Positions 1 to 62,088 of a stretch of DNA of 64,000 nucleotides are shown piece after piece. Source of the DNA: Perna viridis (Eukaryota); the NCBI GenBank assembly GCA_037379345.1, contig CM074521.1, positions 36,418,704-36,482,703 of the forward strand, written 5' to 3'. The translations under genes and the position numbers were made by a program. The notes beneath the pieces were generated by a model that did no database searches, was not told where the DNA came from, and saw only the letters and a list, made by a program, of their open reading frames with translations. Numbering within the stretch: the first letter of the stretch is position 1; the number at the start of each line of letters is the position of its first letter.

Positions 1-503
1 TAACATGACATAGACTAAAACACCTAAACTCCTGCAGAACAACAAAACACAAATTAGAATCTTACCTAATATAGGCTAATGTTGTTATGATGGTATTACA
101 TGCAGTAAATAAGTAAATAACATGAGCTTAAACCCATAAACTCCTGTGGGATTAAAACAAAAGAGCAATCAGAATTGTAATGCCTTAAATATATTAATAT
201 GTTAATTCCTCGCCTAACACACATAGGCCAAAAGTTGTTAACTCCTGCAAGATAAAAATAATAACAGAATAATTATGATCAAAATGCCCCAAATATATGT
301 GATAGGTTAGAATACTCTAAACAGGATAAAAACAAAACAGAAATTACAGGTATAATTCCTGCAATTCATTAGGTCATTCATTCTTACAAAATAAAATAGT
401 TGTGTATCTTCATTGATATTCATTCCTTACTGTACATCTTTATACATTGTATTATTCCTTTTATTTTTATTGCAAAAAAAAAAACATAATAGCAACCACT
501 AAC

Positions 504-1591: not shown

Positions 1592-2100
1592 CTAAAATAG
1601 AAAATAAGAATTAAATGCATGTAACTGTTGCTTCAAAAGAATCTTGTACTGTGATCATACTCGCAAAGACCCCAAAAGACCAAAATAAGTATGTATGCCA
1701 AGGGCACTAACTCCTTCATAGTAGATCCAGAAATCAACTAATTTATTTACACTTCAATTTCTGATAAGGAAAAGCATAAAGTGGTTCTTAACTATTGAAA
1801 GAAAACATTCTCACATGAGAAAAATTGCCTGACCCACAGACAGACAGACAGACAGACAGACATTTTTACAAGAGAGACAAACAGAATAACCCAGGCATTG
1901 CACTGAATATTATATCCTTGCTTCCACAAACTCATTGATTTAATTAATGTAACTTTGTGGTATAAATGGTTTTGACATAAAATCATTAGCGCACTAACTA
2001 ACTGTCTAGGCAATAATGGGCAAATGAATAAATTACATTATACACACCTCCGTGGTAATAATGTGGTTTTGTTACAAAGATTACTCCCAACTCAGTAATC

Positions 2101-3946: not shown

Positions 3947-4085
3947 CTTGATGTCTAAATGAACTATATTTCTCTGATGAAGATAATCTAGTCCCTCCAA
4001 TATCTGTTTCATTATCTTCACTACATCTTGTTCATCAAATGATTCCTCAATAACGCATTCATGGAACAGCTCCCCACCAGAACAG
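3947..4085 (-). CDS. STK17: STK17/DRAK kinase exon 3
   Basis: ttcAG acceptor; CSGGELFHECVIEESFDEQDVVKIMKQILEGLDYLHQRNIVHLDIK; GTAAAT donor; phases consistent. Confidence 0.95.
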
Positions 4086-4500
4086 CTGAAAGAATATATA
4101 CTTTATTTTACCAATATGACAGTAGCCCTCTTTTTCAATTTCCATTACACTTTTTTAGCAAGCTTGGATTGCTACTTTCCATTGGCAAGAGCAGCTAAGA
4201 TTTGAGTTCTATTTCTTAAGGGTTTTCCTTGAGCATATCAATTCCTGGTTGCTCAGAAGGCCCTTTCAACTAGTTCTCATGCCATTTTTTACATCTCATT
4301 ATTAACATTCTTAAAATAAATTCTATTGTCGACATACTTTTTAGATAGTTCATAGCAAAAAAACATGATGAATAACTTCAATGTAAACAGAAAATAGGAG
4401 AACTTTGAAAGATAAGGAGAAGGACCTGGGAACCAAGACATTTTCTTCAGTTGGCTTTTCTCAGCATCCTTTTTCAGAAGTCCTTTAGCCTCTACCCCCC

Positions 4501-10159: not shown

Positions 10160-10372
10160 TATTCTGTAATGAGGATTAGTTCTGTTGTTGTTTCAAACAC
10201 TTCCTTTAACTGTACAAGTCTAGGATGAGACAGAGCTTTTTCTAACATCACCACCTCCCGTAATATCTCCTCTCGACATGTTTTCCCTCTCCGTCGCTTT
10301 TTTATATATTTTGCTGCTACCTCCTCTTTGGTTTCTTTATGGATTAACTTTTTTACTACAGCAAACTTGCCC
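10160..10372 (-). CDS. STK17: STK17/DRAK kinase exon 2 (subdomains I-V)
   Basis: tttctAG|G GGC AAG TTT... encodes GKFAVVKKLIHKETKEEVAAKYIKKRRRGKTCREEILREVVMLEKALSHPRLVQLKEVFETTTELILITEY, then GTAAGT. The KKRRRG basic loop is typical of DAPK/DRAK kinases. Confidence 0.95.
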
Positions 10373-10446
10373 CTAGAAACAATAAATGGAAATATAGTTA
10401 TTTTGACTGTAACTTTTTGTCTTAAAAGTGAACTAACATATCAAAC

Positions 10447-10627
10447 TTGTACAGTACAGCTCAAGAGACTTGTACAGGAGAACTACATGTGTACAGTACA
10501 GCTCAGGAGACTTGTACAGGAGAACTACATGTGTACAATACAGCTCAAGAGACTTGTACAGGAGAACTACACGTGTACAATACAGCTCAGGAGACTTGTA
10601 CAGGAGAACAGTACAGTACAGCTCAGG
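10447..10627. repeat. 42-bp minisatellite (~4 copies)
   Basis: TGTACAGTACAGCTCARGAGACTTGTACAGGAGAACTACATG. Confidence 0.92.
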
Positions 10628-10846
10628 TGATTTGTACATTACAGCTCTGGGCATTGTTTTTTTACTTCGCAATTATGAACATATTTTCAGTTTACAGTCT
10701 CCTATATTAAGGTTTTTGTTATTAGATGAAAATGCATAATAGAGAAATATAACAAGAACATCTTCTTGATTTGGTCTGTAACCATGAGCATAATAGAACA
10801 ATAATTATTTTATCATTGAAAAACAAAGTGTCAAGTGGAAATGTTA

Positions 10847-11112
10847 CAAAAAGAAACCTTGGAGTTCAAGGTGTCTACCAAAAAACCCTGAAGTTTAAGG
10901 TGTGTACCAAAAAACCTGAAGTTCAAGGTGTCTACCAAAAACCCTGAAGTTCAAGGTGTGTACAAAAAACCTGTAGTTCAAGGTGTGTACCAAAAACCCT
11001 GTAGTTCAAGGTGTGTACCAAAAACCCTGTATTTCAAGGTGTGTACCAAAAACCCTGTAGTCAAAGACGTGTACCAAAAATTCGGTAATTCAAGGTGAGT
11101 ACCAAAAACCCC
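10847..11112. repeat. 28-bp minisatellite (~9 copies)
   Basis: CAAAAACCCTGTAGTTCAAGGTGTGTAC. Confidence 0.92.
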
Positions 11113-11954
11113 AAATTAAGAAAGTTTTTACAACCAAAAATGTTTAATATCCATTCTGGTAGTAACAATATTCTATGAACCTCTATTTATACATCTACTC
11201 CAACCTCCCAATGTAATACTTATATCCCTTTTTTCATTTTTCTACTATGACCCTGAATTAATGCATCACAATTACACATGCATCTAAAACCTTGCTCATG
11301 AATATTCATATCATTATAAAAGCACAGATGCTTCCGTGCAACTGCATGTCTTGTAAATTATCTGTTTAGTAAAGTATTAAATTAGTCAGAGCTTATAAAT
11401 CAATCAGAGAGTACACATTAATACCTTATTTTGTATGATTTTGACCTGGAAAGGTTATATTAGTCCCTTGCCAAGCCTGACTCATTGTTTTGTCAAGAAA
11501 ATTCTGCCATCACACTTCAAACCAAAATATACTTAAACCCTCTGTAACCTTTAAAAATAATCCATCTTTACCTACAACTATCGCATCTTTCATCATTTTA
11601 CAACTTTCACACATGAATGAATCTTTTAATTTTGATATTCTTCATAAAACATTTTGTAAAATTTTTGATGGGATAGACATAATTTTTTTCAAACATTCAT
11701 TGTCAAGGTATTTTTACCTGCGTCAATTAAAAGGAGTTGCAAACACTGTAACACAGGGAATGACATTTCTGACTCATTATTACACAATTAAAATGCAACC
11801 ACATGAACTATTGCACTTAAAAAGGCATATCAAACCTATAAAGACTTGTTTATTTACATACTTACTTACAGAACCTAAACTTAGAAGTCTGCCAAAAATT
11901 AACAACTCTGAAACAAGGCCAACTTGTCTATCAATAGTTAACATGAAACCATTC

Positions 11955-12500: not shown

Positions 12501-14127
12501 GGACCAAGTTTTCAATCCTAAACAGTTTTTCATGTATGTGTTGGTCATGTAGTTTTCTGACAGCAATCTTTTCGTAATAGGACCTTAAGCCTTGGACTAA
12601 AGTTTGTCAGTGTCTCCCATTTTCTGATATATAAAATTATTTAAGATAATAATAGCCAGAAAGTTCACCATATTTATATGTGGATCAGTGATGGATGGGA
12701 ATCTGACCAAATGAAGAGATGCCCCTCCCTCCTATATTATTGACTTGTGGACAGTGTAACAACTAGAACATCAAAAGGCTACTTGATAAAATGAACTATA
12801 CAAGCATTTTTTTTTTATAGATATACGATGAACCTGTGATTCTCTTTAAACATCATCATAACTTTCTATAAAGATTCTTCCAAATGAAAACTTGATCCAA
12901 GCCTGATATGGAAGATTCATTATAAACTTGGTATTGAAAGTTCCTTAAAATATACTGCAAAAAATATTATTTTAATCATACGTGCCTATCCACATGTGTA
13001 ATTGCATGCATAATTACATGTAAATGAATTGTAACAATTTTAAGCAACTTTTTAAAGAGGTACTTGAAAGTTTTAAGAATGATATGAAGAAATTTGTGCT
13101 GTACTCATAACTGCCTGAAGTCACAGCAGCATTTTATTTGCAAAATTGAACACAATAGAAGGATTTGGAATTGACCTTCAAGATATCTTTTTAATTTCTT
13201 CCTTGTAGAGATATTATGAAAAAAAAGACTTCCCAGTAATTTTTTTTCATCAAAGGAAATGCATTGTACTAAATCTAGAAAGGAATGTCTAAGTGCAAAT
13301 ATGTTAACACTGGCCCATGGAAGGATTTCACAAGTAGTCTTGATGCCCTTGCTATGAGAAAAATCTTATTTCACCTAACAATGGAATTTGACTTGTAGAG
13401 TGACCTTGAAATTCAATTTATTTCTCCACCCAATAAAAGAATTAATTTTCAGTTTTGTGCTTTCTTCTAAGAATTCACTGTTACATAATATCAAACACTA
13501 CATGTAATATAATACCAGCCTACATGTAAAGCATATCAACATGCCTGCTTCCTGATTACAGGTTTCACCTGAGACAGGTGTGAATTTTACAGGTGATATA
13601 AAATTCAAATAAAAACCCTACAATTAAACCTCTACAAGAAAGCAATTTGAGATTTGCATTTTTATGTCTTTCTTTATACAAGCTGTTTCAGAATGTAATG
13701 TGAAGACGATCTCTCTGTACCTGGTGTATGGTATCTCGTAACAGTTGGACTCACTGGATAGAAAAAGTTAATGGGTTTTATCAGGATACAAGTATTATTT
13801 GGATTGCATAATTTTCTGTTTAAAAATCACAGACTGTGTATTAATGCATGCTTTACCATTATTTGGTCAACAAATGAAATGAAACTGAAAGGTTCCATTA
13901 CAATAACATATTTTTATTTGGGGAGCAAATAATATTTTTTGTAGCTTTTTAAATTTTTGACATGTACATGTATGATTGTATTCCTTTATTACATGTTAAT
14001 TTAGATCTTATGTAAACTTCTGTGCTTATACAAGAAACTTTAGGAAGACATGTTGAAAATCAAGTCAAAAATAGTGTGATTTGTAATGCTTTAATCAACT
14101 GACTCAAACACAATATTAGAAAGTAAG

Positions 14128-26674: not shown

Positions 26675-29276
26675 ACTTTGTACAGTCCAGTGCAACAGTC
26701 TCTGTATGGCTGAATGTTCTGGTCTTTGTACAGTCCAGTATAACAGTAAACATGTACGTGTGTATGTATGGCTGAATGTTCTAGTCTTTGTACAGTCCAG
26801 TGCAACAGTCTCTGTACAGCTGAATGTCCTAGTATTTGTACAGTCCAGTGCAACAGTCTCTGTAAGGCTGAATGTTCTGGTCTTTTTACACTCCAGTGCA
26901 ACAGTCTCTGTACAGCTGAATGTCCTAGTATTTGTACAGTCCAGTGCAACAGTCTCTGTATGGCTGAATGTTCTGGTCTTTGTACAGTCCAGTACAACAG
27001 TAAACATGTACGTGTGTATGTATGGCTGAATGTTCTAGTCTTTGTACAGTCCAGTGCAACAGTCTCTGTACAGCTGAATGTTCTGGTCTTTGTACAGTCC
27101 TGTGCAACAGTCTCTGTACGGCTGAATGTTCTGGTCTTTTTACAGTCCAGTGCAACAGTCTCTGTACAGCTGAATGTCCTAGTATTTGTACAGTCCAGTG
27201 CAACAGTCTCTGTGCGGCTGAATGTTCTGGTCTTTGTACAGTCCTGTGCAACAGTCTCTGTGCGGCTGAATGTTCTGGTCTTTGTACAGTCCAGTACAAC
27301 AGTCTCTGTGCGGCTGAATGTTCTGGTCTTTGTACAGTCCAGTACAACAGTCTCTGTACGGCTGAATGTTCTGGTCTTTTTACAGTCCAGTGCAACAGTC
27401 TCTGTACAGCTGAATGTCCTAGTATTTGTACAGTCCAGTGCAACAGTCTCTGTATGGCTGAATGTTCTGGTCTTTGTACAGTCCAGTACAACAGTAAACA
27501 TGTACGTGTATGTATGGCTGAATGTTCTAGTCTTTGTACAGTCCAGTGCAACAGTCTCTGTACAGCTGAATGTTCTGGTCTTTGTACAGTCCTGTGCAAC
27601 AGTCTCTGTACGGCTGAATGTTCTGGTCTTTTTACAGTCCAGTGCAACAGTCTCTGTACAGCTGAATGTCCTAGTATTTGTACAGTCCAGTGCAACAGTC
27701 TCTGTGCGGCTGAATGTTCTGGTCTTTGTACAGTCCTGTGCAACAGTCTCTGTGCGGCTGAATGTTCTGGTCTTTGTACAGTCCAGTACAACAGTCTCTG
27801 TGCGGCTGAATGTTCTGGTCTTTGTACAGTCCAGTACAACAGTCTCTGTACGGCTGAATGTTCTGGTCTTTGTATAGTCCTGTGCAACAGTCTCTGTACG
27901 GCTGAGTGTTCTGGTCTTTGTACAGTCCAGTACAACAGTCTTGTATTGTCCTGTGCAACAGTCTCTCTACAGCTGAATGTTCTGGTCTTTGTACAGTACT
28001 GTACAACAGTCTCTGTACGGCTGAGTGTTCTGGTCTTTGTACAGTCCAGTACAACAGTCTCTGTACGGCTGAATGTTCTGGTCTTTTTACAGTCCAGTGC
28101 AACAGTCTCTGTACAGCTGAATGTCCTAGTATTTGTACAGTCCAGTGCAACAGTCTCTGTATGGCTGAATGTTCTGGTCTTTGTACAGTCCAGTACAACA
28201 GTAAACATGTACGTGTGTATGTATGGCTGAATGTTCTAGTCTTTGTACAGTCCAGTGCAACAGTCTCTGTACAGCTGAATGTTCTGGTCTTTGTACAGTC
28301 CTGTGCAACAGTCTCTGTACGGCTGAATGTTCTGGTCTTTTTACAGTCCAGTGCAACAGTCTCTGTACAGCTGAATGTCCTAGTATTTGTACAGTCCAGT
28401 GCAACAGTCTCTGTGCGGCTGAATGTTCTGGTCTTTGTACAGTCCTGTGCAACAGTCTCTGTGCGGCTGAATGTTCTGGTCTTTGTACAGTCCAGTACAA
28501 CAGTCTCTGTGCGGCTGAATGTTCTGGTCTTTGTACAGTCCAGTACAACAGTCTCTGTACGGCTGAATGTTCTGGTCTTTTTACAGTCCAGTGCAACAGT
28601 CTCTGTACAGCTGAATGTCCTAGTATTTGTACAGTCCAGTGCAACAGTCTCTGTATGGCTGAATGTTCTGGTCTTTGTACAGTCCAGTACAACAGTAAAC
28701 ATGTACGTGTATGTATGGCTGAATGTTCTAGTCTTTGTACAGTCCAGTGCAACAGTCTCTGTACAGCTGAATGTTCTGGTCTTTGTACAGTCCTGTGCAA
28801 CAGTCTCTGTACGGCTGAATGTTCTGGTCTTTTTACAGTCCAGTGCAACAGTCTCTGTACAGCTGAATGTCCTAGTATTTGTACAGTCCAGTGCAACAGT
28901 CTCTGTGCGGCTGAATGTTCTGGTCTTTGTACAGTCCTGTGCAACAGTCTCTGTGCGGCTGAATGTTCTGGTCTTTGTACAGTCCAGTACAACAGTCTCT
29001 GTGCGGCTGAATGTTCTGGTCTTTGTACAGTCCAGTACAACAGTCTCTGTACGGCTGAATGTTCTGGTCTTTGTATAGTCCTGTGCAACAGTCTCTGTAC
29101 GGCTGAGTGTTCTGGTCTTTGTACAGTCCAGTACAACAGTCTTGTATTGTCCTGTGCAACAGTCTCTCTACAGCTGAATGTTCTGGTCTTTGTACAGTAC
29201 TGTACAACAGTCTCTGTACGGCTGAGTGTTCTGGTCTTTGTACAGTACTGTACAACAGTCTCTGTATGACTGAATA
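26675..29276. repeat. 48-bp satellite (~2.6 kb) with hierarchical higher-order repeats
   Basis: TTTGTACAGTCCAGTGCAACAGTCTCTGTACGGCTGAATGTTCTGGTC. Blocks recur at a 1201-bp offset (ORF starts 27022/28223 and 27501/28702). Confidence 0.97.
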
Positions 29277-44926: not shown

Positions 44927-45542
44927 ATGCAACAAACTGGACTATTGATATTAACAAGGCCTCTACCACTTTTGAAGTCAGGTGTACAGACCATTTTGGA
45001 AGAAGCCTCATCAGTTGTTTCAAATACACTATATGTACATATACAGCCATCTATGGGGAATTCCAAAGAATTTGCTTTCAGAAATGTTCCATGTTCAAAA
45101 GACTTTAGATTTTTAATGACTCAGTTTTACTCTACTGGTGCTAAACTGTGTAGCAACCTTGATGTACGAATTCTAATGAATCATGTCACCAATTTATCAA
45201 AACCATGCCAACTTTTTTCATTTAAAATACCTTGTGATATTATTTTGATAGATAATCATGACATGGTAGAGAAGTTTTCACAAAATTACAAATTGATATC
45301 ATCTCTATTCAATCAATACCCTGTAAAACGTCCTCTGGTACAAAATCTGAAAATGAAAGTAGATAGTGAAAGTACAAATTCAGATTATAACGATGATGGG
45401 CAATTAAAATCTTATAACAATGTGGTGTTAGGAGGCACTTTTGATAGAATACACACAGGTCATAAAATCATGCTGGCGGAGGGGTGTTTATTGGCAGAAA
45501 AACAACTGACAGTTGGTGTAACAGAACAGAATATGAATCAGA
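44927..45542 (+). CDS. COASY: Bifunctional coenzyme A synthase, coding exon 1
   Basis: Acceptor ctttcAG at 44917, ATG at 44927. Contains the PPAT motif VVLGGTFDRIHTGHK (HxGH). GTAAAT donor at 45543. Confidence 0.93.
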
Positions 45543-46012: not shown

Positions 46013-46227
46013 GAAAGGCTCTTTGTGAACTTATTACACCCACTCCTGTTAGAATCCAAGGTGTAAAGGAATTTTTAGAGGACGTCAAACCAAACATTGA
46101 ACATCGAGTGGTACCAATCTCTGATATGTATGGTCCAACAATTACTGATTCAGAACTAGAATACATTGTTGTCAGCGAGGAAACAAAGAAAGGAGGCGAT
46201 ATGGTGAATGAGGAAAGGAAAAAGAAG
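46013..46227 (+). CDS. COASY: COASY coding exon 2 (PPAT domain)
   Basis: KALCELITP...DMYGPTITDSELEYIVVSEETKKGGDMVNEERKKK; AG/GT boundaries in phase. Confidence 0.95.
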
Positions 46228-46636
46228 GTATATCACATATCAACAGTATCATAAATTATGAACAATAGAAAATTATGTACTGGTAGGATTTCTCAACAAA
46301 ATTAACTAATGTGGATATTTTGAAACCTATTTTATAAAAATACATGTAATTCCTGAAAATTGATGCTCCTTATTTTATTATAACTGAGAAGCCAACCTGC
46401 ATTCACTTTGTCTGTGCTGTGTGGATTGCTGATAAGCTTCAGTTCTAGTAAACACTGTTGTTAGTGTATTAATTTTTGCAGATTCTAATATTGGTGTCAA
46501 TATTTACTAAATAACTACTGTTTGATAAAATAATTACTTTTTGATAAAATAATTACTGTTTCATAAAATAACTACCGTTTCATAAAATAACTACTGTAAA
46601 AAAAAAGAAAAAAAGAAGAAGTTGATTAGTTGATAA

Positions 46637-47192
46637 TATATAGGGTTACCAACGTCGTGATGTGGTATATAGGGTTACCAACGTGGTGATGTGGTATATA
46701 GGGTTACCAACATCGTGACGCGGTATATAGGGTTACCAACGTCGTGACACGGTATATAGGGTTACCAACGTCGTGGCGAGGTATATTGGGTTACCAACGT
46801 CGTGATGTGGTATTTAGGGTTACCAAGGTCGTGATGTGGTACATAGGGTTGCCAACGTCTTGATGTGGTATTTAGGGTTACCAACGTCTTGATGTTGTAT
46901 TTAGGGTTACCAACATCGTGATGCGTTATTTAGGGTTACCAACATCGTGGGTGGTATATAGGGTTACCAGCATCATGATGTGGTATATAGGGTTACCAAC
47001 ATTGTGATGTGGTATATAGGGTTGCCAGCATCGTGATGTGTTATATAGGGTTGCCAACATTGTGATGCTGTATTTAGGGTTATCAACATTGTGATGTGGT
47101 ATATAGGGTTACCAACATCGAGATGTGGTATATAGGGTTACTAATGTTGTGATGTAATATTTAGGGTTATTAATATGATGCCATGATGTGGT
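46637..47192. repeat. 29-bp minisatellite (~19 copies)
   Basis: TAGGGTTACCAACGTCGTGATGTGGTATA units, ending just upstream of the COASY exon 3 acceptor. Confidence 0.95.
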
Positions 47193-47218
47193 AATTATGT
47201 CCTTCATTTACATGACAG

Positions 47219-47350
47219 GGATTTTCCACATTAGAACAACATGTTATTGAATTGGTAGAAGATGCTTGTCATAATCAGTATGAAGAAGAGAAGATAAGTT
47301 CTTCATCCTTACGGAAGAGGTTACTGGGGACTGTTGTTAATTCTATAAAG
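47219..47350 (+). CDS. COASY: COASY coding exon 3 (PPAT C-terminus and linker)
   Basis: acAG|GFSTLEQHVIELVEDACHNQYEEEKISSSSLRKRLLGTVVNSIK|GTAATG; 132 nt, phase 0 at both ends; KISSS motif. Confidence 0.93.
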
Positions 47351-50300
47351 GTAATGATAACATTGTGAAGTTCTTCATCATTATGGAAGAGGTTACTGGG
47401 AACTGTTGTTATCCTATAAAGGTGATGATAACATTGTGAAGATAAGTTCTTCATCATTACAGAAGAGGTTACTGGGGACTGTTGTTAGTCCTATAAAGGT
47501 AATGATAACAATGTGAAGTTCTTCATCATTACGGAAGAGGTTACTGGGAACTGTTGTTAATCCTATAAAGGTAATGATAACATTGTCAAGATAAGTTCTT
47601 CATCATTACAGAAGAGGTTACTGGGAACTGTTGTAAATTCTATAAAGTTAATGATTACATTGTGAAGATAAGTTCTTCATCATTACTGAAAAGATTACTG
47701 TTAACTGTTGTTAATTCTATGAAGTTAATGATAACATTTTGAAGTTCTTCATCATTACAGAAGAGGTAACTGGGAAGTATTGTCAATCCTATGAAGGTAA
47801 TGATAACATTGTGAAGATAAGTTCTTCGTCATTACTATTCTGTTACCAGGTAACAATTTATTTTTCAATTCTAAACATTTTCTATTTTTAGCAATAATTA
47901 TTTGAGGTCTGTTCGATTTCTATTATGGATGTTTCATTCCCGGATAATAAGTTTCCTCATGTTAACAAACCATGTGAACATAAACAATCAACAATTCGTT
48001 TAATTCTATGATAGCTCACGATCTTTTTATCGCTATCATTGTTGAATAAAGACGTTCTATGAGACAATGTTGGTTATGCTATCTGCACTGCTGCAGAATA
48101 ATTACGGAAGAGGTGACTGGGGACTGTTGTTAATCCTATAAAGGTAATGATAACATTGTGAAGATAAGTTCTTCATCATTACAGAAGAGGTTGCTGGGGG
48201 GTGTTGTTAATCCTATAAAGGTAATGATAACATTGTGAAGTTCTTCATCATTACAGAAGAGGTTACTGGGGACTGTTGTTAATCCTATAAAGGTAATGAT
48301 AACATTGTAAAGATGAGTTCTTCATCATTACAGAAGAGGTTACTGGTGACTGTTGTTAATCCTGTAAAGGTAATGCTAACATTGTGAAGTTCTTCATCAT
48401 TACAGAAGAGGTTACTGGGAACTGTTGTTAATCCTGTAAAGGTAATGATAACATTGTGAAGATAAGTTCTTCATCATTACGGAAGAGGTTACTGGGGACT
48501 GTTGTTAATCCTATAAAGGTAATGATAACATTGTGAAGATAAGTTCTTCATCATTACGGAAGAGGTTGCTGGGGGGTGTTGTTAATCCTATAAAGGTAAT
48601 GATAACATTGTGAAGTTCTTCATCATTACAGAAGAGGTTACTGGGGACTGTTGTTAATTCTATAAAGGTAATGATAACATTGTGAAGTTCTTCATCATTA
48701 CGGAAGAGGTTACTGGGGACTGTTGTTAATCCTATAAAGGTAATGATAACATTGTGAAGATAAGTTCTTCATCATTACGGAAGAGGTGACTGGGGACTGT
48801 TGTTAATCCTATAAAGGTAATGATAACATTGTGAAGATAAGTTCTTCATCATTACAGAAGAGGTTGCTGGGGGGTGTTGTTAATCCTATAAAGGTAATGA
48901 TAACATTGTGAAGTTCTTCATCATTACGGAAGAGGTTACTGGGGACTGTTGTTAATCCTATAAAGGTAATGATAACATTGTAAAGATGAGTTCTTCATCA
49001 TTACAGAAGAGGTTACTGGGGACTGTTGTTAATCCTGTAAAGGTAATGATAACATTGTGAAGTTCTTCATCATTACGGAAGAGGTTACTGGGAACTGTTG
49101 TTAATCCTGTAAAGGTAATGATAACATTGTGAAGATAAGTTCTTCATCATAACAGAAGAGGTTACTGGGGACTGTTGTTAATCCTATAAAGGTAATGATA
49201 ACATTGTGAAGATAAGTTCTTCATCATTACTGAAGAGGTTGCTGGGGGGTGTTGTTAATCCTATAAATGTAATGATAACATTGTGAAGTTCTTCATCATT
49301 ACAGAAGAGGTTACTGGGGACTGTTGTTAATCCTGTAAAGGTAATGCTAACATTGTGAAGTTCTTCATCATTACAGAAGAGGTTACTGGGAACTGTTGTT
49401 AATCCTGTAAAGGTAATGATAACATTGTGAAGATAAGTTCTTCATCATTACGGAAGAGGTTACTGGGGACTGTTGTTAATCCTATAAAGGTAATGATAAC
49501 ATTGTGAAGATAAGTTCTTCATCATTACGGAAGAGGTTGCTGGGGGGTGTTGTTAATCCTATAAAGGTAATGATAACATTGTGAAGTTCTTCATCATTAC
49601 AGAAGAGGTTACTGGGGACTGTTGTTAATTCTATAAAGGTAATGATAACATTGTGAAGTTCTTCATCATTACGGAAGAGGTTACTGGGGACTGTTGTTAA
49701 TCCTATAAAGGTAATGATAACATTGTGAAGATAAGTTCTTCATCATTACGGAAGAGGTTACTGGGGACTGTTGTTAATCCTGTAAAGGTAATGATAACAT
49801 TGTGAAGATGAGTTCTTCATCATTACAGAAGAGGTTACTGGAGACTGTTGTTAATTCTATAAAGGTAATGATAACATTGTGAAGTTCTTCATCATTATGG
49901 AAGAGGTTACTGGGGACTGTTGTTAATTCTATAAAGGTAATGATAACATTGTTAAGTTCTTCATCATTACGGAAGAGGTTACTGGGGACTGTTGTTAATC
50001 CTATAAAGGTAATGATAACATTGTGAAGATAAATTCTTTATCATTACTGAAGAGGTTACTGGGGACTGTTGTTAATCCTGTAAAGGTAATGATAACATTG
50101 TAAAGATGAGTTCTTCATCATTACAGAAGAGGTTACTGGAGACTGTTGTTAATTCTATAAAGGTAATGATAACATTGTGAAGTTCTTCATCATTATGGAA
50201 GAGGTTACTGGAGACTGTTGTTAATTCTATAAAGTTAATGATAACATTGTGAAGTTCTTCATCATTATGGAAGAGGTTACTGGGAACTGTTGTAAATCCT

Positions 50301-50395
50301 ATGAAGGTAATGATTACATTGTGAAGTTCTTCATCATTATGGAAGAGGTTACTGGGAACTGTTGTTATCCTACATAGGTAATGATAACATTGTCA
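47293..50395 (+). repeat. 72/77-bp satellite derived from the COASY exon 3 3' end plus splice donor (~37 copies)
   Basis: Unit GTAATGATAACATTGTGAAG(ATAAG)TTCTTCATCATTACGGAAGAGGTTACTGGGGACTGTTGTTAATCCTATAAAG. The first copy is the real exon end. Confidence 0.97.
47836..48100. mobile_element. 265-bp insertion with 7-bp terminal inverted repeats and 5-bp TSD (solo-LTR-like)
   Basis: ATTAC|TATTCTG...CAGAATA|ATTAC, interrupting one satellite unit; AATAAA at 48045-48050. Confidence 0.8.
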
Positions 50396-50660
50396 ATGGG
50401 GAAAATCTATAATCTACTAGAATTTAGGAAATGCTATAAACTTTGAAGAAATATCTCCTCAAACAATATTTAGTATGTTACTGTCATGGAGAAAATATGT
50501 TTTTTTTTTACTTGTTTTCATTACTGGTGCATTTTAATACACTGCTGGATGAGTTTTACTTTTTTCCCTCTTCATGTTTAACAATTACTGATATAAACAG
50601 ATTGGCCTAAGTATCAGCACTTACAAGTAGTTAGTCATACAATAATGTATAATACAAGTC

Positions 50661-50823
50661 AAACAGTAATCAAGGGAACCAAGATTCTAGCGGAAATCAA
50701 ACGAATGTAATCCAGGGACAAAGACCAGACATGGAAAACAGACATACACAAAAAGAACATAAAATAACCAAAATAATACATACTAAGTAACAAAAGTAAA
50801 TGAGCAACTCTGGACTCCACTAA
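50661..50823 (-). mobile_element. Dispersed repeat, inverted copy of ~57971-58136 (probable retroelement UTR)
   Basis: GTAATCAAGGGAACCAAGATTCTAGCGG...AAATGAGCAACTCTGGACTCCACTAA corresponds to the reverse complement of TTAGTGGAGTCCGGGTTGCTCATTT...GAATCTCGGATCCCTTGATTAC. Confidence 0.8.
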
Positions 50824-51523
50824 GACAAGTTTTATTATAGGAATAAAAGCTGAATGAGTTCATCAGTGTTTGAAATAGACCAACTCACTAATAAACTAAG
50901 TAAAGCCAAAACAGATTCATGGAAAGTTTGTGAGAGAGTTGGAATGAACTCCTACAAAACAGTGTCTATTTGTAAAACATTTAAACTTTGAAGCAGTTAC
51001 TTCATTTGAATATGGTGGCTACTACACCATATTATTCAAAAAAATATATTCCTAATTTTTGAACAGGTTAAATAGAATACCCTGGTGTGGGCTAGTTTAT
51101 ACTTTTTATAATTTAATTTCTAATTAATGACAGTCCAAATATTTAAAATAATTAATTCATAATTGAGACATTATTTTATCTGGGATTATTTGAATTGCAA
51201 TGTGCAGACGAATCAAGGTTTATGCATAATGCTAAGCCAGGTTATACAAGATAACCTGGTGTGCTCAAAGAGAACCAACCAATCAGAAAGCTTGTTACAA
51301 ATCAAATTAAATTATAAATTCATACACAGCAACCATTAATAAAAAATAACAAAAACATTGCCAATCAAAATCTTCGTAATTATCAATACTGGAATTTATA
51401 TGGTGTATACACTCTATGGACTGTTTAAGAGATTTGTCACTTTTCAGTTCTGAAATGCAGGAGTTTTTTTGATCATAAGAGTAGCAGTCTTCAGGTCCTA
51501 CAAACGTGGTTATTGTTTTACAG

Positions 51524-51650
51524 GCTAATGATACAATACCAGCTAGACCATATGTGATAGGACTTACAGGAGGTATAGCCAGTGGGAAGTCAGCACTGTG
51601 TGGTAGGCTTGAGAAACTAGGAGCTGCAGTTGTAGACTGTGATAAATTAG
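51524..51650 (+). CDS. COASY: COASY coding exon 4 (DPCK Walker A)
   Basis: ANDTIPARPYVIGLTGGIASGKSALCGRLEKLGAAVVDCDKL(G); ttacAG acceptor and GTATTA donor. Confidence 0.95.
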
Positions 51651-52864: not shown

Positions 52865-52992
52865 GCCATGAAGTATATTTAAAAGGAACAGCCTGCTATG
52901 AAAGAATAGTCAAGGAATTTGGGCAAGAAATAGTTAGCAAAAATGGAGAAATTCAGAGACGCTCACTTGGATCTATTGTTTTTAGCAATCCT
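52865..52992 (+). CDS. COASY: COASY coding exon 5
   Basis: HEVYLKGTACYERIVKEFGQEIVSKNGEIQRRSLGSIVFSNP; tttcAG acceptor and GTAAGA donor. Confidence 0.95.
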
Positions 52993-53175
52993 GTAAGATT
53001 TCAAAATTAATTGACTTTGTTTGTTTGAAACACTTTTTGTTCATATGTTTCAGCAATGTTTGAATGACCGAGAGAGAAAAAAAGCCCTTTCGGTTGGTAA
53101 TTACACATTTTATTGTTTAAATCTTTAGGTGTCAGAAAAACTATAATCATTATAATTTATTGTTGTATTTTTAAG

Positions 53176-53257
53176 AATAAACTGAAGTTGTTAAACTCTA
53201 TAGTGTGGCCTGAGATAGCAAGACTTGCTGAAGACAGAATAAAAGAATTTGGAAATG
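53176..53257 (+). CDS. COASY: COASY coding exon 6
   Basis: NKLKLLNSIVWPEIARLAEDRIKEFGN; ttaAG acceptor and GTTTGT donor; phase consistent. Confidence 0.9.
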
Positions 53258-53860
53258 GTTTGTAATTTTGGTAGTATGCAATGGACATACTTACTTTAAC
53301 AGAAATAGCTATGTCATAACTCTACTTTACCATAATGTCATGTACTATGTCATACAGTTGAAACATTAGAAATATATTATCTTGATCTGACACAGCAAAG
53401 TTTTGGGAAAAAATGTATGCTCTTCTACACAGGAAAAATGTAACATTTCTTTAAAAATCAAATGGAAATTTATGATAACAGCTAATAGAAATATGCATTC
53501 TTCGTGTTTTAAAAACACATTCAAAACAGTTTTTTTCCAAATGCAGATGAAAAACATGTTGTTCCCATATCAATTCATATGTTTACTATATTAGTATTTT
53601 ACACATGTATTTCTAGGGTTGATTCTTCATAAATATATCATTAATATGTTTTAAGAAAACAAGTATAACAGAAAATCTTGGCCTGGTGGCAATAAAACTG
53701 AAAACAAATGCTCAAGCCTGAGAACAGTGTTAACTGCCACTTCAATCAAAGTCTTGGTATTTTATTATGTCACAAAATACATTTTAGACTTGAGTAATAA
53801 TAATGAGTTGTGTGTTGCCTGTAACCAGTACCAAATGTAGTGATGTTATCTTATTTATAG

Positions 53861-53961
53861 ATGGTAAGGAGGTAGTTATACTGGAAGCTGCTTTACTAAT
53901 AGATGCTGGCTGGAATAGTCTGGTACATGAGGTTTGGACATCAGTTATTCCTCCTGCAGAG
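53861..53961 (+). CDS. COASY: COASY coding exon 7
   Basis: GKEVVILEAALLIDAGWNSLVHEVWTSVIPPAE; tatAG acceptor and GTAATC donor. Confidence 0.95.
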
Positions 53962-54266
53962 GTAATCCATAAAAGCAGAAACTACAAAAAAATCCATTTG
54001 TAGTCTAGAGAGCCATCTAATAGAAATTATTACTTTTTTCAATAAAAAGAATCCCTACAGAGGAAGACTGGAAGACCAGTCTGGTTGATTTGAATTTTAA
54101 ACAATTTTGTGCTCCTTCAAGATCTATAGAATTATAGTGTTTCATTTAGTTACTTTTCTGAAATAAAGCAGATTAAGAACATGTTTTATACCCTGGTGCC
54201 CCAGAAAATTCCATGTTCTTAAATTCTATAGTTTCTTAAAGCAACAGTTGTTATTCATGGTATATA

Positions 54267-54431
54267 CTGTAAACATATTAACTTTCAAGATGTTTTAATT
54301 TTCACTATTTCCCACGGTGGACATAAAAGTGTGAAATCAGTTTTTAACAATTTATAACTGTAATCATTTTGTAAAACCGTGAAAATTGATACCACGTAAA
54401 TATATTCACTTGAAAATTTATACGTTTACAG
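54267..54431. mobile_element. Tc1/mariner-type MITE in COASY intron 7
   Basis: ~23-bp imperfect TIRs CTGTAAACATATTAACTTTCAAG and CTTGAAAATTTATACGTTTACAG, preceded by TA. Confidence 0.7.
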
Positions 54432-54758
54432 TTGTATATTTACTAATGTTATATATCATATACATTTATCAACATAGCGCCAAACACAATCCACTGAATT
54501 TAGTACAGGTATAGCTATCAAAAACAAGATTTAAAGTAAAATTTTAACTAATATGTAAACTGGTTGCCAACATTCCCTTCTAGTGTGTTCAGACTTATCA
54601 TCATTTTTTGAAAAACTTGTCTGTTTCTAACTTTGTGATACACCAGGTTTATATATATAAAAAAACCTTTTTTAACATTCTTCTTGACTATAATTTCTAG
54701 TGTAATATGACTGTGTTATTGAATACATTGTTCTCATTTATTTTTGTTAATATTGTAG

Positions 54759-54959
54759 GCTGTGAAAAGATTGCAAGAGAGAAACAATTTATCTGAAGAA
54801 GAGGCAAATAAAAGATTAAAGACACAGTTATCTAATAAGGACAGGGTTGACCAATCAAATGTTGTTTTATGTACACTCTGGGAATATGAGTATACACAGA
54901 CTCAGGTGGAGAAAGCTTGGTTGTTATTACAAGAAAGACTGAAAGAAAGAAATGCTTGA
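54759..54959 (+). CDS. COASY: COASY last coding exon
   Basis: [23 protein letters not shown]...[20 protein letters not shown]...A then TGA. The eight exons sum to 1602 nt, i.e. 533 aa plus stop. Confidence 0.95.
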
Positions 54960-55078
54960 TAGTGAAAGTATTAAGCTGAAGGTTACTTGATAGTCAAAGT
55001 ATTAAGGTGAAGGTTACTTGATAGTCAAAGTATTAAGGTGAAGGTTACTTGATAGTGAAAGTATTAAGGTGAAGGTTA
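54955..55078. repeat. 31-bp tandem repeat x4 overlapping the COASY stop codon
   Basis: CTTGATAGT(G/C)AAAGTATTAAG(C/G)TGAAGGTTA. Confidence 0.92.
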
Positions 55079-56639
55079 CAAATACTATATATAGATTTAA
55101 TAGGGTTATCTTTTACTGACAACTCCTCATGTATTTTAACTTTTTTGGTTTTGAGTACTTCTTGTATTTGATTTATTTTTGAATCTTGAACTTTCTGAGT
55201 ATTTGGTTCTAATGTTTCTGATAAGAGGTTATTCCTTGATTCACATGTACGGCATACTGAAATTTGCAATATTTATATGATTGTGTTTTTTTTTGTATTG
55301 AAAAGATCTATAATATTGATAAACTTTTATTGATAACTCTTATTCTTGCAATGTTAACATTATTTTCCTTATTTTCTTGATCACAGGAATCATTGTATTT
55401 CCTGCCCTATTCATTTTATTTCCTGCCCTAGTCATTTCATCTCTTGTTCTAATCTGAAAATTTTTAAAATGGTGCATTTTGTTTCCAATTTTCAACTCCC
55501 CGTATGTTTACTCACATTCCATGTGAAAAATAAAGTTAAAACTAATTTTAAGACCAATTTTGAAGATTTACAACAAGATCTTGTGAGTTTATTTATGCAG
55601 TATACAAACTTATTTTTGTGAGTGATTATTTGGACTGATTTAGCAAGCATGAAGAATCATGAAAATAAATCCCTTCATTGTGAAATACATGTGAAACTGA
55701 GTGTTAGTCACAGAAACAAGTAACGAAATCAGATGGAAAGTAAGTACTTTTGCGACAATAAGGTAATGTGGAATAAACTTGGTTTACAATAATTGTGTGA
55801 TGACTAATTAGAAAAACTCGAAACTTTTACAAAGTAAATTTTTTGTATGTATTGCAATTCATACAAATTACATTGTAAACTTTTTAATATCACTCTTATT
55901 GAATAATCAGGATATTAAATGTATTTTTTAAGTACAAAGACTTGTGTTTCGTTGATCAGTATGTGTCTGTTGTTTCCATATAACTGGTTTATAATAAAAG
56001 TTTTACTGAATTGTAAATCATTATTGAAATTATAATGCCAAAATCTTTGCTTCAAGAATCCATTTATTCATTAGAATTGATAGAAAAAGCTTATTGTTGA
56101 TCTGATTTTTATTATTCAGATGTCAATCTGTTCTTTTTTGAATTTTTTTACATGGTAGGGGTACAAAATTCGGCGTAACCAATAACAACAAAATATTTTA
56201 GCTTTTATGGTTTGTATGTTGGAATTTCTAAGGTTTGGTTTAAATATGTTTCCACATTAAGAGGTCTGTCTGGATATGTCTGAGCCTTCAGCGTTTGTTG
56301 AGACCGCCCGGTTTTATCTTTTATACTTCTTTACTTTTATTTCCAATTACTGAAAAGTGTTAAGTATAAAAATAAGGATGGACGAGTTGTTCGTACTTGT
56401 CAAAGCAAGCACTTTCCTTTCGGCAATTTTCATCACTATGATGTAAGTTTTTTTTTTTAAATCCAAAGAAGCAACGCTTCATAGATTGAAGTGCAAAATG
56501 TACTACCAAGCCTCTTTTCGTAACTAATAATTTCCACACTCACAACTGTCAGATTGTGTCTTCAGTCTTACCACGACACACGTCACTCCCATAGTGGTAT
56601 CATTTCACAGCATGTGGATCCTGGAAAATTTAAAAGATA

Positions 56640-58471: not shown

Positions 58472-60226
58472 CTATATATCACTGATATCAAGGGCATATA
58501 TTTTAGCTCTGTGTCCTTTAGATTCATTGGTCACAGACCCACAACCAACATACAGTATGTCATTCCTATTTATGCTTAAAGAGTACGGAAATTGGATTCC
58601 TAGTGTTCTAGTGTTAATGTAGGAAACGGGATCGCCTTGGTAGTTTAGTATATGAATTGTATGGTTTGTGTTCTCTGATACCAGAAAATTGTCGTCTTTC
58701 GATGTTGTCAAGTCCATGAACACACATTTAAATGGATATTCAAAACCGATACTAGGATGTCCTGTATACACATTGAGAACATTTCCTAATTGATCAAGAA
58801 CTACAACTCTCCCGCTCATATCTGTTGTGTAGATATCTATGACTGCAATATTGTTAAGACTATTTGAAGTAACACGAGCTGGTACAGAAAAAAGTGGCTT
58901 CATATTTTTGTCAATTTCAAACACCTGTCTGATTCTACCTTGCGTATCCATGACAACGATTTGGCGTGGTCCTTTGACTGGCAACATATCCTCTCCTTCA
59001 GCCGTTCCCACTATTATTCGATTGTCATGTGTTACATGGACTGCTAGTGGTATCATAGGAGCAACACAATATTTTGAATCGGTCAGTCTTTTTGGTTTGT
59101 TTGGAGTTATAAGTTTGAGAACAGATGAACCCTTGACTGACAGAAGTAGTTTTCCTGAACCCTGATAAGCCATATCACCAAGATCAGTTCTTACTTCCGA
59201 TTTTATGTGAAGTGATTCGTCCACTACTGTTGCATTCTGAAGTGTATTTTGAGTGTTGTTAACCCATAGAGAATCGTCATATTTTGAGACTAACAGTTTA
59301 ACAATATCCAACTCTGTTTCAATACATTGTACCACTTTAAATGCTTCATCCCTACACATAGGAACATATTCCAGTTTTCCGTAAAACTCAGAAATTAAAC
59401 TTAAGTTACCTGGTTTAAACGAAGAAATGTCAACTTCCTGGTCTCTTGCATAACTGACAGCAGACTTGAGAGTCTTCTCGCAATTATTTAAAATTGATTC
59501 AAAAGCATAGAACACTTTTTCAGTGTCATTAAATTCAACGATTTCGTTTATCGTTTCATGAAGCTTGCAGAAAGCTTTCAGATCACTCTCTAATTTGTTT
59601 CGTTCTTGCATCAGTGTATTCCATGACGCTTCCAGATCATTCGTGACTTCTTGAGATTTTTGTTTGATTGTCTCAATCAGTTTCTTCTCGTGTTTACTTA
59701 GTACATCTTTAATATCATTATACTTTCTCCTTTGCATTGACAGATGTTTTTTAATGTCTTCATTTCTTTTTATAATAAAAGTTACTTTTGATTCCACCAT
59801 TGAGACTGCAACTTTTAATCTGTTCAAGCGAGTAGTATATTCGCTTTCGATATCAACGAAGTCGTGATTCTTGTGATCTCCTGCTACACATTTAGCACAC
59901 ACAAAGCGATTGCATGACTTACAGAAGTGGTAACTGGCTTGTGATGGATGTTCACTACATTTCAGCTTGGTAAGATTAACGCTAATATCAGATGTCGATT
60001 TCCCTAGTTTGTTTCCTTCTGCAGCAATGTTCCTTACTTCTTTGATATTTATAACTGTATGATTTGGTTTTAACTTTGGATGGACAACCTCTTTACAATT
60101 TTTACAGATAAGACTTCCACACTGATTACACTTCCATTCCATCTTTTCGTCCTTTTCACATAACTGACACTTCAATGGAGCTTGTTCCTTGCTAATCTGT
60201 CTTTTAAATGATGAACCTGAACTCAT
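58472..60226 (-). CDS. RING-less TRIM-like protein: two B-boxes, coiled coil, C-terminal NHL/beta-propeller-like region (584 aa, intronless CDS)
   Basis: B-box1 CQLC..CNQC..ICKNC...VH...H; B-box2 CSEH..FCKSC..VCAKC...DHKNH; K/E/L-rich heptads; beta-strand repeats (PLAVHVT, PARVTSN, PYSLSIN). Confidence 0.88.
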   Translation of the reverse strand: MSSGSSFKRQISKEQAPLKCQLCEKDEKMEWKCNQCGSLICKNCKEVVHPKLKPNHTVINIKEVRNIAAEGNKLGKSTSDISVNLTKLKCSEHPSQASYHFCKSCNRFVCAKCVAGDHKNHDFVDIESEYTTRLNRLKVAVSMVESKVTFIIKRNEDIKKHLSMQRRKYNDIKDVLSKHEKKLIETIKQKSQEVTNDLEASWNTLMQERNKLESDLKAFCKLHETINEIVEFNDTEKVFYAFESILNNCEKTLKSAVSYARDQEVDISSFKPGNLSLISEFYGKLEYVPMCRDEAFKVVQCIETELDIVKLLVSKYDDSLWVNNTQNTLQNATVVDESLHIKSEVRTDLGDMAYQGSGKLLLSVKGSSVLKLITPNKPKRLTDSKYCVAPMIPLAVHVTHDNRIIVGTAEGEDMLPVKGPRQIVVMDTQGRIRQVFEIDKNMKPLFSVPARVTSNSLNNIAVIDIYTTDMSGRVVVLDQLGNVLNVYTGHPSIGFEYPFKCVFMDLTTSKDDNFLVSENTNHTIHILNYQGDPVSYINTRTLGIQFPYSLSINRNDILYVGCGSVTNESKGHRAKIYALDISDI

Positions 60227-62088
60227 TTTCTTGCACTTATGTCAACTTCACACAGATAAAACATATGCATCTAAATCATTGTATATTAACCTGCTTTCTA
60301 AAATGCGCATTTAAACAGAGACGCGTTTTTCGATTTTATTCTTCTGAGTCTGAACTTTTATCTATTTGAACATTTCGATTTGGTAACAGAAAAATTATCT
60401 TACCTACTATTTTCGATATTGGCAAGATAACTGATATGTTGTTAGAAAATCAGTGCAAAATTGATTACATTCAACAAATGATAGGTCACATATGATTTAG
60501 TAAGCATATGTCCTAAATTAAATGTTTCAAAATAAAACACAATGAAAGAACTGAGTTGCAATAATTGAATGGTCAGATTAAAAGGCGTCTTCTTCATGCT
60601 CTTCTGGAAACACCTACAGAAGTTCACGGCGTGCAGGAGCAGATCCAAGCGGGCGCGCACTCAGCGCCCCCCACCCCATGGTTACAAATTCTTTTTTTAC
60701 ATGAAATGTTATTTTGTTCACAAATTCTTTTTTATCATAACACTCTGGATCCGACGTTTTTTTTATATCTTCAATAAATATGTGTCGATGTTGTTGAAGG
60801 GTGTGTAGGCGTAAGAGGTTGGAATTCTGTAATCATCCGCCTGTAAAAGGGGTACATTTCTGGTACTGGTAAAATGAGAAACCTAGCTGAAACTTTAAGC
60901 TAACAGATGTCTAAATTCAGTGGAAAAAAAAAACGATTTACGAGCTGTTACCAATTGTTCTGAATGCAATTTTGTATGAAACTGAGAAGATTGTGGCTAG
61001 GTTTTCCAATCGCTAATAAAGAGTGCAGGTAGGCAAAGAAATTTTAAGAAGATATAGCATTTTATTTTTAGACCTTTTTATATGGGTTGGTGTAATGCTC
61101 CTTAAAAAGACAAGTTTTCTTGAAACAAATTATCTATCGAATGTCGTCTAATTTTGAGACGTTTTTGAATAGTAACTCACAAACTGTAAGTATGACCGAG
61201 CATCCTTGATCTCATTAGAAAGCTGAAACATCAAGCTGCATGATTATGCTCAATTTTGATTAAGTTCTTTCCAGGGAATTGCTGTAATAATAAAAACGAA
61301 AAAAATCCACAAACTAGTTTTGCCTTGTATGTATGTGTATATGTATCAAAATGAGGTACAAGATAAGATGGAATATATAGCACAATATATCACCGGACTT
61401 ATTGCTTTGAGCACAGCCTATCAACTAACTACCTAACACATTTCATATGGTAATGCTTATAGGGTCTGAAGGAGACCAACTCTGTCCCCTGAATTTAACT
61501 ATTTATTATTGTAAATATATATATATAATCTCCTGTAAGTTCATGGAAATCTCATGAGTGTGTTTTGCTCATCAACACATTGTAGTAATTCAAAATTATC
61601 ACTTAGGACTGATATTATTGACATTACACATAATTTACTTAGAGAAAACAAGAGATTGTATAAAAAATCAAAGGAATATTTCTCTGTTACTGCATTAACA
61701 TTTCGGGATCCCATTCTTTGTGCTGTGTGAAGGATAAAATTTGGATCACAAACCCTGCACGTGCGCAAGTAGCAGAGATCACTTGTAACGATGCTAGACA
61801 AACCACCGATGGTACTTTCGGTGAAGAAAGTGTTATATGGAAAATTGACAAAAAATGTCTCCCTGTGGAATATTTTACAATCTATAGTTAGAACTCGTTT
61901 TCATCTCAGATTCACTGAACAATATTGTATTAGCTATTGATGACAGTCAGTGTTATTTCTATATTCTATTAAGTAAAGATCAGGGATTATGTTCTCCAAC
62001 ATGTCTAGCGACCATGGGAAATGAGAATTATGGGTCTCTGACACCGGATTTAAGTTAAAGCTTTATGAAATAGAGTTATTCCGCAATA

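Follow-up and report, generated by a model that had tools for sequence, protein, structure and literature searches.

Minisatellites whose first monomer lies over an exon-intron boundary are known from the human genes F7 (IVS7, a 37-bp VNTR), IFI6 (6-16), CBS (IVS13), LMNB2 and PDGF, and in F7, LMNB2 and PDGF the most upstream splice site alone is used (PMC1557585). In amphioxus, 'mirage' minisatellites have been described in Adh3 and in the globin genes BflGb6 and BflGb9, with length differences between haplotypes and somatic instability (PMC3087553). According to the Rogers model (cited in PMC3087553), tandem duplication of segments containing AG/GT can lead to intron gain or to alternative 5' splice sites.

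The array in intron 3 of the COASY gene of Perna viridis, detected in the window analysed here (the whole stretch of 64,000 nucleotides), is a real example of this already described kind of repeat, in which the first monomer spans the exon-intron boundary. Its units are intronic and fall within 10-160 bp, the first monomer covers the authentic boundary, the donor is reiterated, the upstream site is the one spliced (at low read depth), and the centre evolves in concert with the boundary units excluded. With a probability of about 85%, it is a locus-specific intronic junction-spanning minisatellite of the F7-IVS7 or 'mirage' type, without a shown function.

As in the F7-type genes, an authentic donor is followed by sequence-identical intronic pseudo-donors, and the most upstream site is used, as in F7, LMNB2 and PDGF; the repeats of PDGF, LMNB2 and IFI6 (units of 81-100 bp, 10-25 copies) are also comparable. 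The COASY array differs in its occurrence in a bivalve, in its exon part (52-57 nt, compared to 4 nt in F7), in its higher number of copies (37), and in its two registers and higher-order repeats. Moreover, F7 was studied with functional minigene tests, whereas the COASY array is known from sequence and RNA reads. The amphioxus mirages are likewise tandem duplications of exon-intron boundaries in an invertebrate, with units of 10-160 bp, many of which keep AG/GT; they leave regular splicing undisturbed, recur across genes of one genome, and possess a concerted centre with boundary units outside the homogenisation. They belong to another phylum, however, and the COASY array is longer (3.1 kb). 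Common to the Rogers model is that the duplication creates potentially usable splice signals, but the COASY copies are located wholly within an intron that already existed and that Mytilus has at the same position, and no new intron or isoform was seen at the array.

The array-bearing gene is COASY, encoding the bifunctional CoA synthase (PPAT and DPCK). This assignment, already made in the first-pass annotation of this DNA, is borne out by the Pfam domains CTP_transf_like and CoaE and by the alignment of orthologues. The exons were searched singly (Pfam, tblastn), without a joined spliced model. Exon by exon, Pfam gave the domain order PF01467 on exon 1 and then PF01121 on exons 4, 5, 7 and 8, and residues 1-530 of Mytilus edulis COASY were collinear with the locus (tblastn). 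The full-length orthologues were obtained from a second protein search; the exon 1 query gave mostly exon-1-sized fragments. Among contigs encoding the exon 1 product, one of 1.7 kb was the sole match, and none was retrieved for its nearest relative. The following features were assigned to the gene:

44927 to 45542, plus strand: COASY coding exon 1, with the ATG at 44927, the N-terminal region and the start of the PPAT domain
46013 to 46227, plus strand: COASY coding exon 2 (PPAT domain), boundaries ttag/GA and AAG/gtatat
47219 to 47350, plus strand: COASY coding exon 3, 44 codons, GFSTLEQHVIELVEDACHNQYEEEKISSSSLRKRLLGTVVNSIK
47348 to 47356, plus strand: authentic 5' splice site AAG/GTAATG, with GT at 47351-47352, the site used in RNA
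50398 to 51523, plus strand: rest of intron 3 on the 3' side, unique sequence with polypyrimidine tract and acceptor ttattgttttacag
51524 to 51650, plus strand: COASY coding exon 4, end of the linker and start of the DPCK domain, P-loop GLTGGIASGKS
52865 to 54959, plus strand: COASY coding exons 5-8, approximate limits, from Pfam CoaE on three pieces and tblastn with Mytilus COASY (exon 5, 52865-52992; exon 6, about 53179-53259; exon 7, about 53860-53961; exon 8, 54759-54959 including the stop codon)

Exon 1, which ends in phase 1 and is followed by GTAAAT, matched CTP_transf_like (E=9e-8) and showed 58% identity to residues 1-204 of Mytilus edulis COASY. For exon 2, the identity to residues 204-274 of Mytilus COASY was 65-69% (tblastn). 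Exon 3 is 82% identical to Mytilus exon 3, is covered by RNA reads from 47242 to 47350, and contains the conserved motif K[IV]SSSSxRxRLLGT (aligned with 21 metazoan COASY proteins). Exon 4 matched CoaE (E=7e-9) and is 85% identical to its Mytilus counterpart.

Tandem Repeats Finder called one array at 47291-50393 (periods 72, 149 and 375; score 3509). When anchored on the 20-nt intron part, the interval 47294-50397 (3.1 kb) consists of 38 head-to-tail units with a spacing of 72 or 77 nt, namely the real exon 3 end and 37 copies inside intron 3 (donors from 47351 to 50378). In each unit, 52 or 57 nt from the end of exon 3 (ISSSSLRKRLLGTVVN[S/P]IK) are followed by GTAATGATAACATTGTGAAG, the first 20 nt of the intron. 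The array is organised as follows:

47294 to 47370, plus strand: unit 1 (founder monomer), composed of the final 57 nt of exon 3 and the initial 20 nt of intron 3
47371 to 47835, plus strand: degenerate block at the proximal end, comprising units 2-7 and a 5' stub of unit 8
47836 to 48100, plus strand: transposon-derived insertion of 265 nt within unit 8
48101 to 50397, plus strand: main homogenised block, units 8-38, with higher-order periods of 149, 298 and 375 nt

The first-pass annotation had described an exon 3/intron junction amplified about 37 times, with a protein-coding first unit and an AAG/GTAATG donor retained in most copies, and all of this agrees with the analysis. Unit 1 belongs to an expressed exon, as judged by homology to COASY orthologues and by spliced RNA reads; it possesses a private C at 47308, TCT (Ser) at 47342-47344 and, in its intron part, an in-frame TGA at intron positions +16 to +18. 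The exact 9-mer AAGGTAATG occurs in 32 of the 38 units and GT is retained in 35; among the 37 copies alone, the values are 31 and 34, respectively. The coding variants listed in that annotation (CGG/CAG, ACT/GGT, CCT/TCT and ATA/GTA) are all present, and TGG and CTG were found in addition to CGG and CAG. Most units encode Pro where the exon encodes Ser, as had also been noted: CCT is present in 29 of the 38 units and TCT in nine, the exon being among the nine.

The units are not equally diverged. Central units show 0-2 mismatches, and units 2-7 and 34-38 show 3-10. In the proximal block, 4-10 mismatches per 72 nt to the exon unit were counted, unit 2 carries a 1-nt deletion, and some donors have decayed (GTGATG, TTAATG); units 34-38 form a degenerate distal edge. 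The nearest relative of unit 2 is unit 38, and both have an old 1-nt deletion in common. Within the main block, units 13, 16, 26, 29 and 33 are identical, and a stretch of 298 nt has a 100% duplicate 971 nt away.

The copies contain stops, frame-breaking 52-nt exon parts and CpG decay (CGG to CAG or TGG), and are therefore free of coding constraint. A coding array was rejected, as the frame is lost in 52-nt exon parts and meets an in-frame stop in the 20-nt spacer, and stops occur in several units. Open frames of up to 106 amino acids on the minus strand across the array were regarded as a by-product of the 72-nt periodicity, and all RNA reads are oriented as for a plus-strand transcript, counter to these frames.

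Tandem repeats are error-prone in assemblies, and the array or its length could in principle result from misassembly, but the chance of this is close to negligible. The genome is assembled in 46 contigs for 723 Mb, and array words are present in sequencing runs from nine studies. In an independent DNA sample, the summed word depth over the unit was 1700-3500 in comparison to 65.6 for a single-copy contig of the distal flank, which roughly corresponds to 30-50 copies, i.e. tens, summed word depth being no true copy number. In contigs of this sample, the last unit is continuous with the unique flank; DNA as well as RNA contigs run from this unit into CAATGGGGAAAATC... The share of C at 47342 in the same sample was 69%, versus 29 of 38 units in the assembly. 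Furthermore, the divergence is structured: the degenerate edges, the identical centre and a transposon that interrupts one unit and has a clean target duplication of 5 bp together argue for natural turnover and not for misassembly.

In a search of the whole 723-Mb genome with 298 nt of the array, the COASY locus alone was matched. It is thus a single array locus and not genome-wide satellite DNA. In Mytilus edulis, the homologous intron occupies the same position, measures 267 nt, and contains no array.

The RNA evidence for the region 47170-47385 comes from two runs, one with nine raw reads and the other with a single contig. Position 47350 is joined to exon 4 at 51524 in six of six spliced reads and in the contig; both exit at 47351 and continue as CTAATGATACAATACCAGC..., the start of exon 4. 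The donor joining 51524, which the first-pass annotation had proposed to determine from RNA, is thus the authentic one. Five of the six spliced reads extend into unique exon sequence (47242-47289), and the remaining three reads of the run, which are of array type (C at 47342), represent unspliced intron. No decoy-spliced read was detected among the six spliced reads, at this low depth. The authentic first donor is the site used, and the downstream decoys are probably silent below the detection limit, although decoy use may reach up to a few tens of percent, be tissue-specific, or be cleared by NMD.

The first-pass annotation had suggested that the copies could act as a field of decoy donors. 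In a functional version of this idea, the 31 identical sites would bind U1 snRNP or allow regulated premature-stop splicing and so tune COASY output. Such a device could draw on the exact donor 9-mer in 31 copies, with an identical exon context of 52-57 nt in every one of them, and on the in-frame TGA which splicing from any downstream donor would add; in human IFI6 and CBS, the two pseudo-sites nearest to the authentic one are in fact used (PMC1557585). A functional decoy field is nevertheless very unlikely here. Only the authentic donor appears in the RNA reads (low depth), with the array-type reads unspliced, and the edge donors have decayed (beside the two forms given above, to AAT/GT and TAG/GT), as expected without selection. 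Mytilus does not possess the array, and a Slo-like gene of the Perna viridis genome contains three further junction-spanning arrays. Like arrays at an unrelated gene point to a mutational process and not to a gene-specific device, and their recurrence hints at a splice-junction-linked cause beyond simple slippage. The COASY array is an instance of a known and apparently neutral repeat class recurring in this genome, and neither a decoy role nor a reservoir role specific to COASY is needed.

The exon is older than the array, since the coding sequence that is repeated corresponds to the K[IV]SSSSxRxRLLGT motif conserved in metazoan COASY. The opposite direction, a recruitment of the exon end from an older satellite, was rejected on the same motif and on the lack of an array in Mytilus. 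It is likely that a neutral junction minisatellite arose when the final 52-57 nt of COASY exon 3 were duplicated in tandem together with the adjoining 20 nt of intron 3. Its breakpoints would have been located in AAG microhomology between the intron (...GTGAAG) and the exon (...GAG-AAG-ATA-AG-TTC), which could yield the two registers of 77 and 72 nt. Growth to 37 additional units may then have occurred via unequal crossing-over, slippage or conversion, with the centre being homogenised into higher-order repeats and both edges decaying. Exon 3 would still be defined by its own acceptor and first donor and be spliced to 51524, and the 31 sequence-identical downstream donors would stay silent as intron, their use leading to an in-frame TGA and an unproductive transcript. 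The copies, free of coding constraint, would have kept the ancestral Pro codon, and the exon would since have changed to Ser.

Bivalve COASY orthologues have N-P-[I/V]-K, and Pro is found at this position in many other metazoan COASY proteins as well, in line with the Pro which the first-pass annotation had mentioned for vertebrate COASY. There, it had been proposed to polarise Ser and Pro by means of orthologues, Ser in outgroups counting against an exchange between exon and array; Pro was found in bivalves. Because of these bivalve sequences, the Pro of the array is ancestral and the Ser of the exon derived. Across animals, this linker position is freely variable (P, T, Q, E or S).

Past exchange between exon and array is possible, the data being compatible with its occurrence as well as with its absence. 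A tentative alternative, less likely than not, is that variants were carried from array to exon end or back by unequal crossover or gene conversion, and that the change from Pro to Ser was imported or exported in this way; a passage of the Ser codon itself between exon and array by these routes is slightly more doubtful still. The derived T at 47342 occurs in the exon and in eight array units on different backgrounds, although CCT (Pro) is ancestral, but a C-to-T transition that happened in parallel would explain this just as simply. All four combinations were observed in 34 of 136 informative site pairs, indicating that variants were shuffled among units; many of these pairs, however, include 47312/47313, a hypermutable CpG. 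Only 2 of 72 sites separate the exon from the commonest unit, but such similarity to the array consensus is expected anyway if selection holds the exon close to the ancestral sequence. Unequal exchange is the accepted mode of minisatellite turnover (PMC3087553). At 47308, all 37 copies possess A and the exon C, and therefore no recent exchange covered this site; no tract has passed over it since the substitution. The spliced reads of the one RNA run contain the Ser form only. A reservoir of PPAT-DPCK linker variants, as suggested in the first-pass annotation, is not supported by the pattern at 47308, and the freedom of the linker position to vary among animals implies no adaptive value. If exchange did take place, the array would be a source of such linker variants, exon-end alleles would segregate together with array-length alleles, and junction-spanning minisatellites, whose frequency in this genome is unusually high, would introduce sequence changes at the coding ends of essential genes.

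Independently of exchange, the locus represents a clean natural test of the choice of the spliceosome among many identical 5' splice sites, and it extends to a mollusc the behaviour of human F7, in which the most upstream site wins. The copies serve as a fossil record of the exon end, with the ancestral Pro kept while the exon moved to Ser. For genome annotation, it is of importance that protein-to-genome aligners match the copies as pseudo-exons, and gene models can go wrong. In all other respects, the array is an ordinary member of the described repeat class.

The transposon interruption of the array is a detail absent from the first-pass annotation. The insertion derives, with an internal deletion, from a dispersed repeat about 790 nt in length and is flanked by the target duplication ATTAC at 47831-47835 and 48101-48105; excision of the insertion together with one ATTAC restores an intact unit. 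The dispersed repeat is present in at least 40 copies genome-wide with 88-96% identity, which often form direct pairs separated by about 7 kb.

The COASY gene was searched one exon at a time. The exon pieces are collinear with residues 1-530 of COASY from Mytilus edulis, the nearest orthologue found (identity 58% for exon 1, 82% for exon 3 and 85% for exon 4). These identities indicate a mussel-like bivalve that is only distantly related to Mytilus. Pfam gave CTP_transf_like for exon 1 and CoaE for four of the later exons. The mapping bore out coding exon 3 and the position 51524 of the first-pass annotation.

COASY coding exons (window positions, + strand)
44927-45542, coding exon 1
46013-46227, coding exon 2
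47219-47350, coding exon 3
51524-51650, coding exon 4
52865-52992, coding exon 5
about 53179-53259, coding exon 6
about 53860-53961, coding exon 7
54759-54959, coding exon 8

Intron 2 holds two further minisatellites, both without exon sequence (46509-46597, 19 nt x 4.7; 46637-47169, 29 nt x 18), the second of which stops 50 nt upstream of the exon 3 acceptor. The coding end of the gene is also tandemly copied (54955-55079, 31 nt x 4, 96% matches), from the last codon and stop (GCT TGA TAG...) into the 3'UTR, that is, at the stop codon and with no splice junction involved.

At the end of exon 3, Tandem Repeats Finder reported one large array (window 47291-50393; periods 72, 149 and 375; score 3509). 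Anchoring on the 20-nt intron part GTAATGATAACATTGTGAAG delimited 38 units, with donors from 47351 to 50378 spaced by 72 or 77 nt. Unit 1 is no copy and consists of the final 57 nt of the coding exon and the initial 20 nt of the next intron; the repeated COASY exon/intron junction described earlier is thus confirmed, with the true junction as its first unit. The two unit lengths result from two joining registers: intron ...GTGAAG is followed by ATAAGTTC in the 77-nt units and by TTC in the 72-nt units, and both joins lie within an AAG microhomology (intron +18..20 versus exon GAG-AAG-ATA-AG). As had been noticed, most copies carry the real donor: the exact 9-mer AAG|GTAATG occurs in 32 of the 38 units (the real donor and 31 copies), and GT is kept in 35.

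Donor use was followed with reads placed beside the array (47170-47385 only). The raw-read RNA run X21 gave nine reads, all in the orientation expected of a + strand transcript, and five of them cover the unique exon part absent from the array (47250-47289). Six reads exit at 47351 into CTAATGATACAATACCAGCTAGACC..., the beginning of exon 4 (51524), and the same join occurs in one contig of a second RNA run, X11. Similarity to the exon reaches at least 99% in six of the nine reads and is lower in the remaining three; at 47342 three reads have C, as in the array, and three continue past the donor. These are taken to be the same three reads, representing intron RNA of the 37 copies piled on one unit. 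No read class joining one unit to another was found among the reads on 47170-47385. Since the X21 reads and the X11 contig show the exon 3-exon 4 join and unit-to-unit joins are absent, the authentic first donor is the one used; this rests on six spliced reads, which set a loose upper limit to the use of decoys.

The copies are free of coding constraint. Exon parts of 52 nt disrupt the reading frame, the 20-nt spacer is GTA ATG ATA ACA TTG TGA in the frame of the exon, and several units contain stops, so that a transcript using a downstream donor would reach a premature stop. The commonest unit variation is CpG decay (CGG to CAG or TGG).

The repeated coding piece is the K[IV]SSSSxRxRLLGT motif, conserved in COASY across metazoans. 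Therefore, the exon is older and served as the source of the array, and the origin from a functional junction proposed in the first-pass annotation is right. Since the intron at the homologous position in Mytilus edulis (267 nt) lacks the array, and a 298-nt array query against the whole genome (723 Mb, 46 contigs) gave the COASY array as the only candidate locus, the array is lineage-specific.

Units 2-7 and 34-38 are degenerate, and the central units are 0-2 mismatches apart; some of these match exactly, and a 298-nt stretch recurs unchanged 971 nt away. Units 2 and 38, at the array ends, are mutual nearest relatives and have an old 1-nt deletion in common. Unit 8 is split by an internally deleted 265-nt copy of a dispersed repeat (47836-48100), flanked by the 5-bp target duplication ATTAC, and its removal restores an intact unit. 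At least 40 copies of this repeat occur in the genome (88-96% identity), often in direct pairs about 7 kb apart. It is about 790 nt long, the pairs are LTR-like, the ends read TGTTCTG...CAGAATA and the target duplications measure 5 bp; about 523 internal bases are missing from the copy in the array. Degenerate edges, a homogeneous centre and an insertion are typical of how a minisatellite evolves. A misassembly was also considered; the degenerate edges, the identical central units and the insertion with its target duplication argue against it.

The array was also found in X4, DNA of another sample and study than the best-matching run. In X4, contigs run from the last unit into the unique flank, and word depth summed over the unit comes to about 1700-3500 versus 65.6 for the single-copy flank contig, although such sums are not copy numbers. 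The share of C at 47342 is 69% in X4 versus 29/38 in the assembly. These data give rough support for tens of copies beyond the assembled individual.

Most units encode Pro where the exon has Ser, as annotated before (CCT in 29 of 38). The exon end reads N-P-[I/V]-K in the bivalve orthologues of Mytilus, Pinctada, Magallana, Ostrea and Mactra, and Pro is common at this position across animals. Because of this, Pro is the ancestral state, preserved in the 29 CCT units, and the Ser (TCT) of the exon is derived. At 47308 Mytilus DNA has A, like the array and unlike the exon, and at 47329 it has the GGA of the edge units, which carries little weight because both sites are synonymous and the species is distant. 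It is possible that conversion or unequal exchange has moved sequence between the exon and the array. The derived T at 47342 is common to the exon and eight array units of differing backgrounds, and all four combinations occur in 34 of 136 informative site pairs, which fits shuffling among units, possibly including unit 1. However, recurrent mutation fits these data too, since CpG is involved in many of the four-combination pairs, and at 47308 the exon differs from 37 of 37 copies, so no recent exchange tract spans that site. Nothing suggests an adaptive role of the Ser/Pro variation, since among animals the residue at this position of the linker is free to vary.

Minisatellites spanning an exon-intron junction are a known class. 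F7, LMNB2 and PDGF use the authentic, most upstream donor only, and IFI6 and CBS also use the two pseudo-sites nearest to it (Borensztajn et al., PMC1557585). The "mirage" minisatellites in Adh3 and globins of amphioxus have the same arrangement; splicing is undisturbed, and the centre is in concerted evolution with the boundary units excluded (PMC3087553). With its authentic upstream donor in use (six spliced reads), the COASY array resembles F7, LMNB2 and PDGF. All tested defining features of the class were found in it, and it adds a new member, both large and well preserved. The functional reading as a field of decoy donors and a reservoir of variants found no support.

In the 20 kb fetched around a Slo-like potassium-channel exon of the same genome (G000:C7:29077001-29097000, 29.08 Mb; L025+L026), three more junction-spanning arrays were detected (local positions 92-201, 10907-11148 and 12609-13085), one of which overlaps an exon matching Pfam BK_channel_a.

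Junction-spanning arrays in the Slo-like gene
40 nt x 6, exon end and GTAA
55 nt x 2, acceptor and exon start
94 nt x 5, ...VANVG|GTAAGT

That such arrays recur speaks for a mutational tendency of the whole genome and not for a COASY-specific device. Intronic minisatellites are very abundant in this genome: the four fetched regions contain roughly 5-10 arrays for every 20 kb.

Elsewhere in the window, a 2.5-kb array (26676-29146) of about 50 copies of 48-nt units has higher-order periods and long open frames on both strands, which most likely arise from the periodicity itself. Upstream of COASY lie two protein-kinase-like exons (3863-4102 and 10162-10440, both - strand), the second adjoined by a 42-nt x 4.7 array (10448-10638). 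Downstream, a single open frame of 589 aa (58475-60241, - strand) is Cys/His-rich and B-box/TRIM-like by eye.
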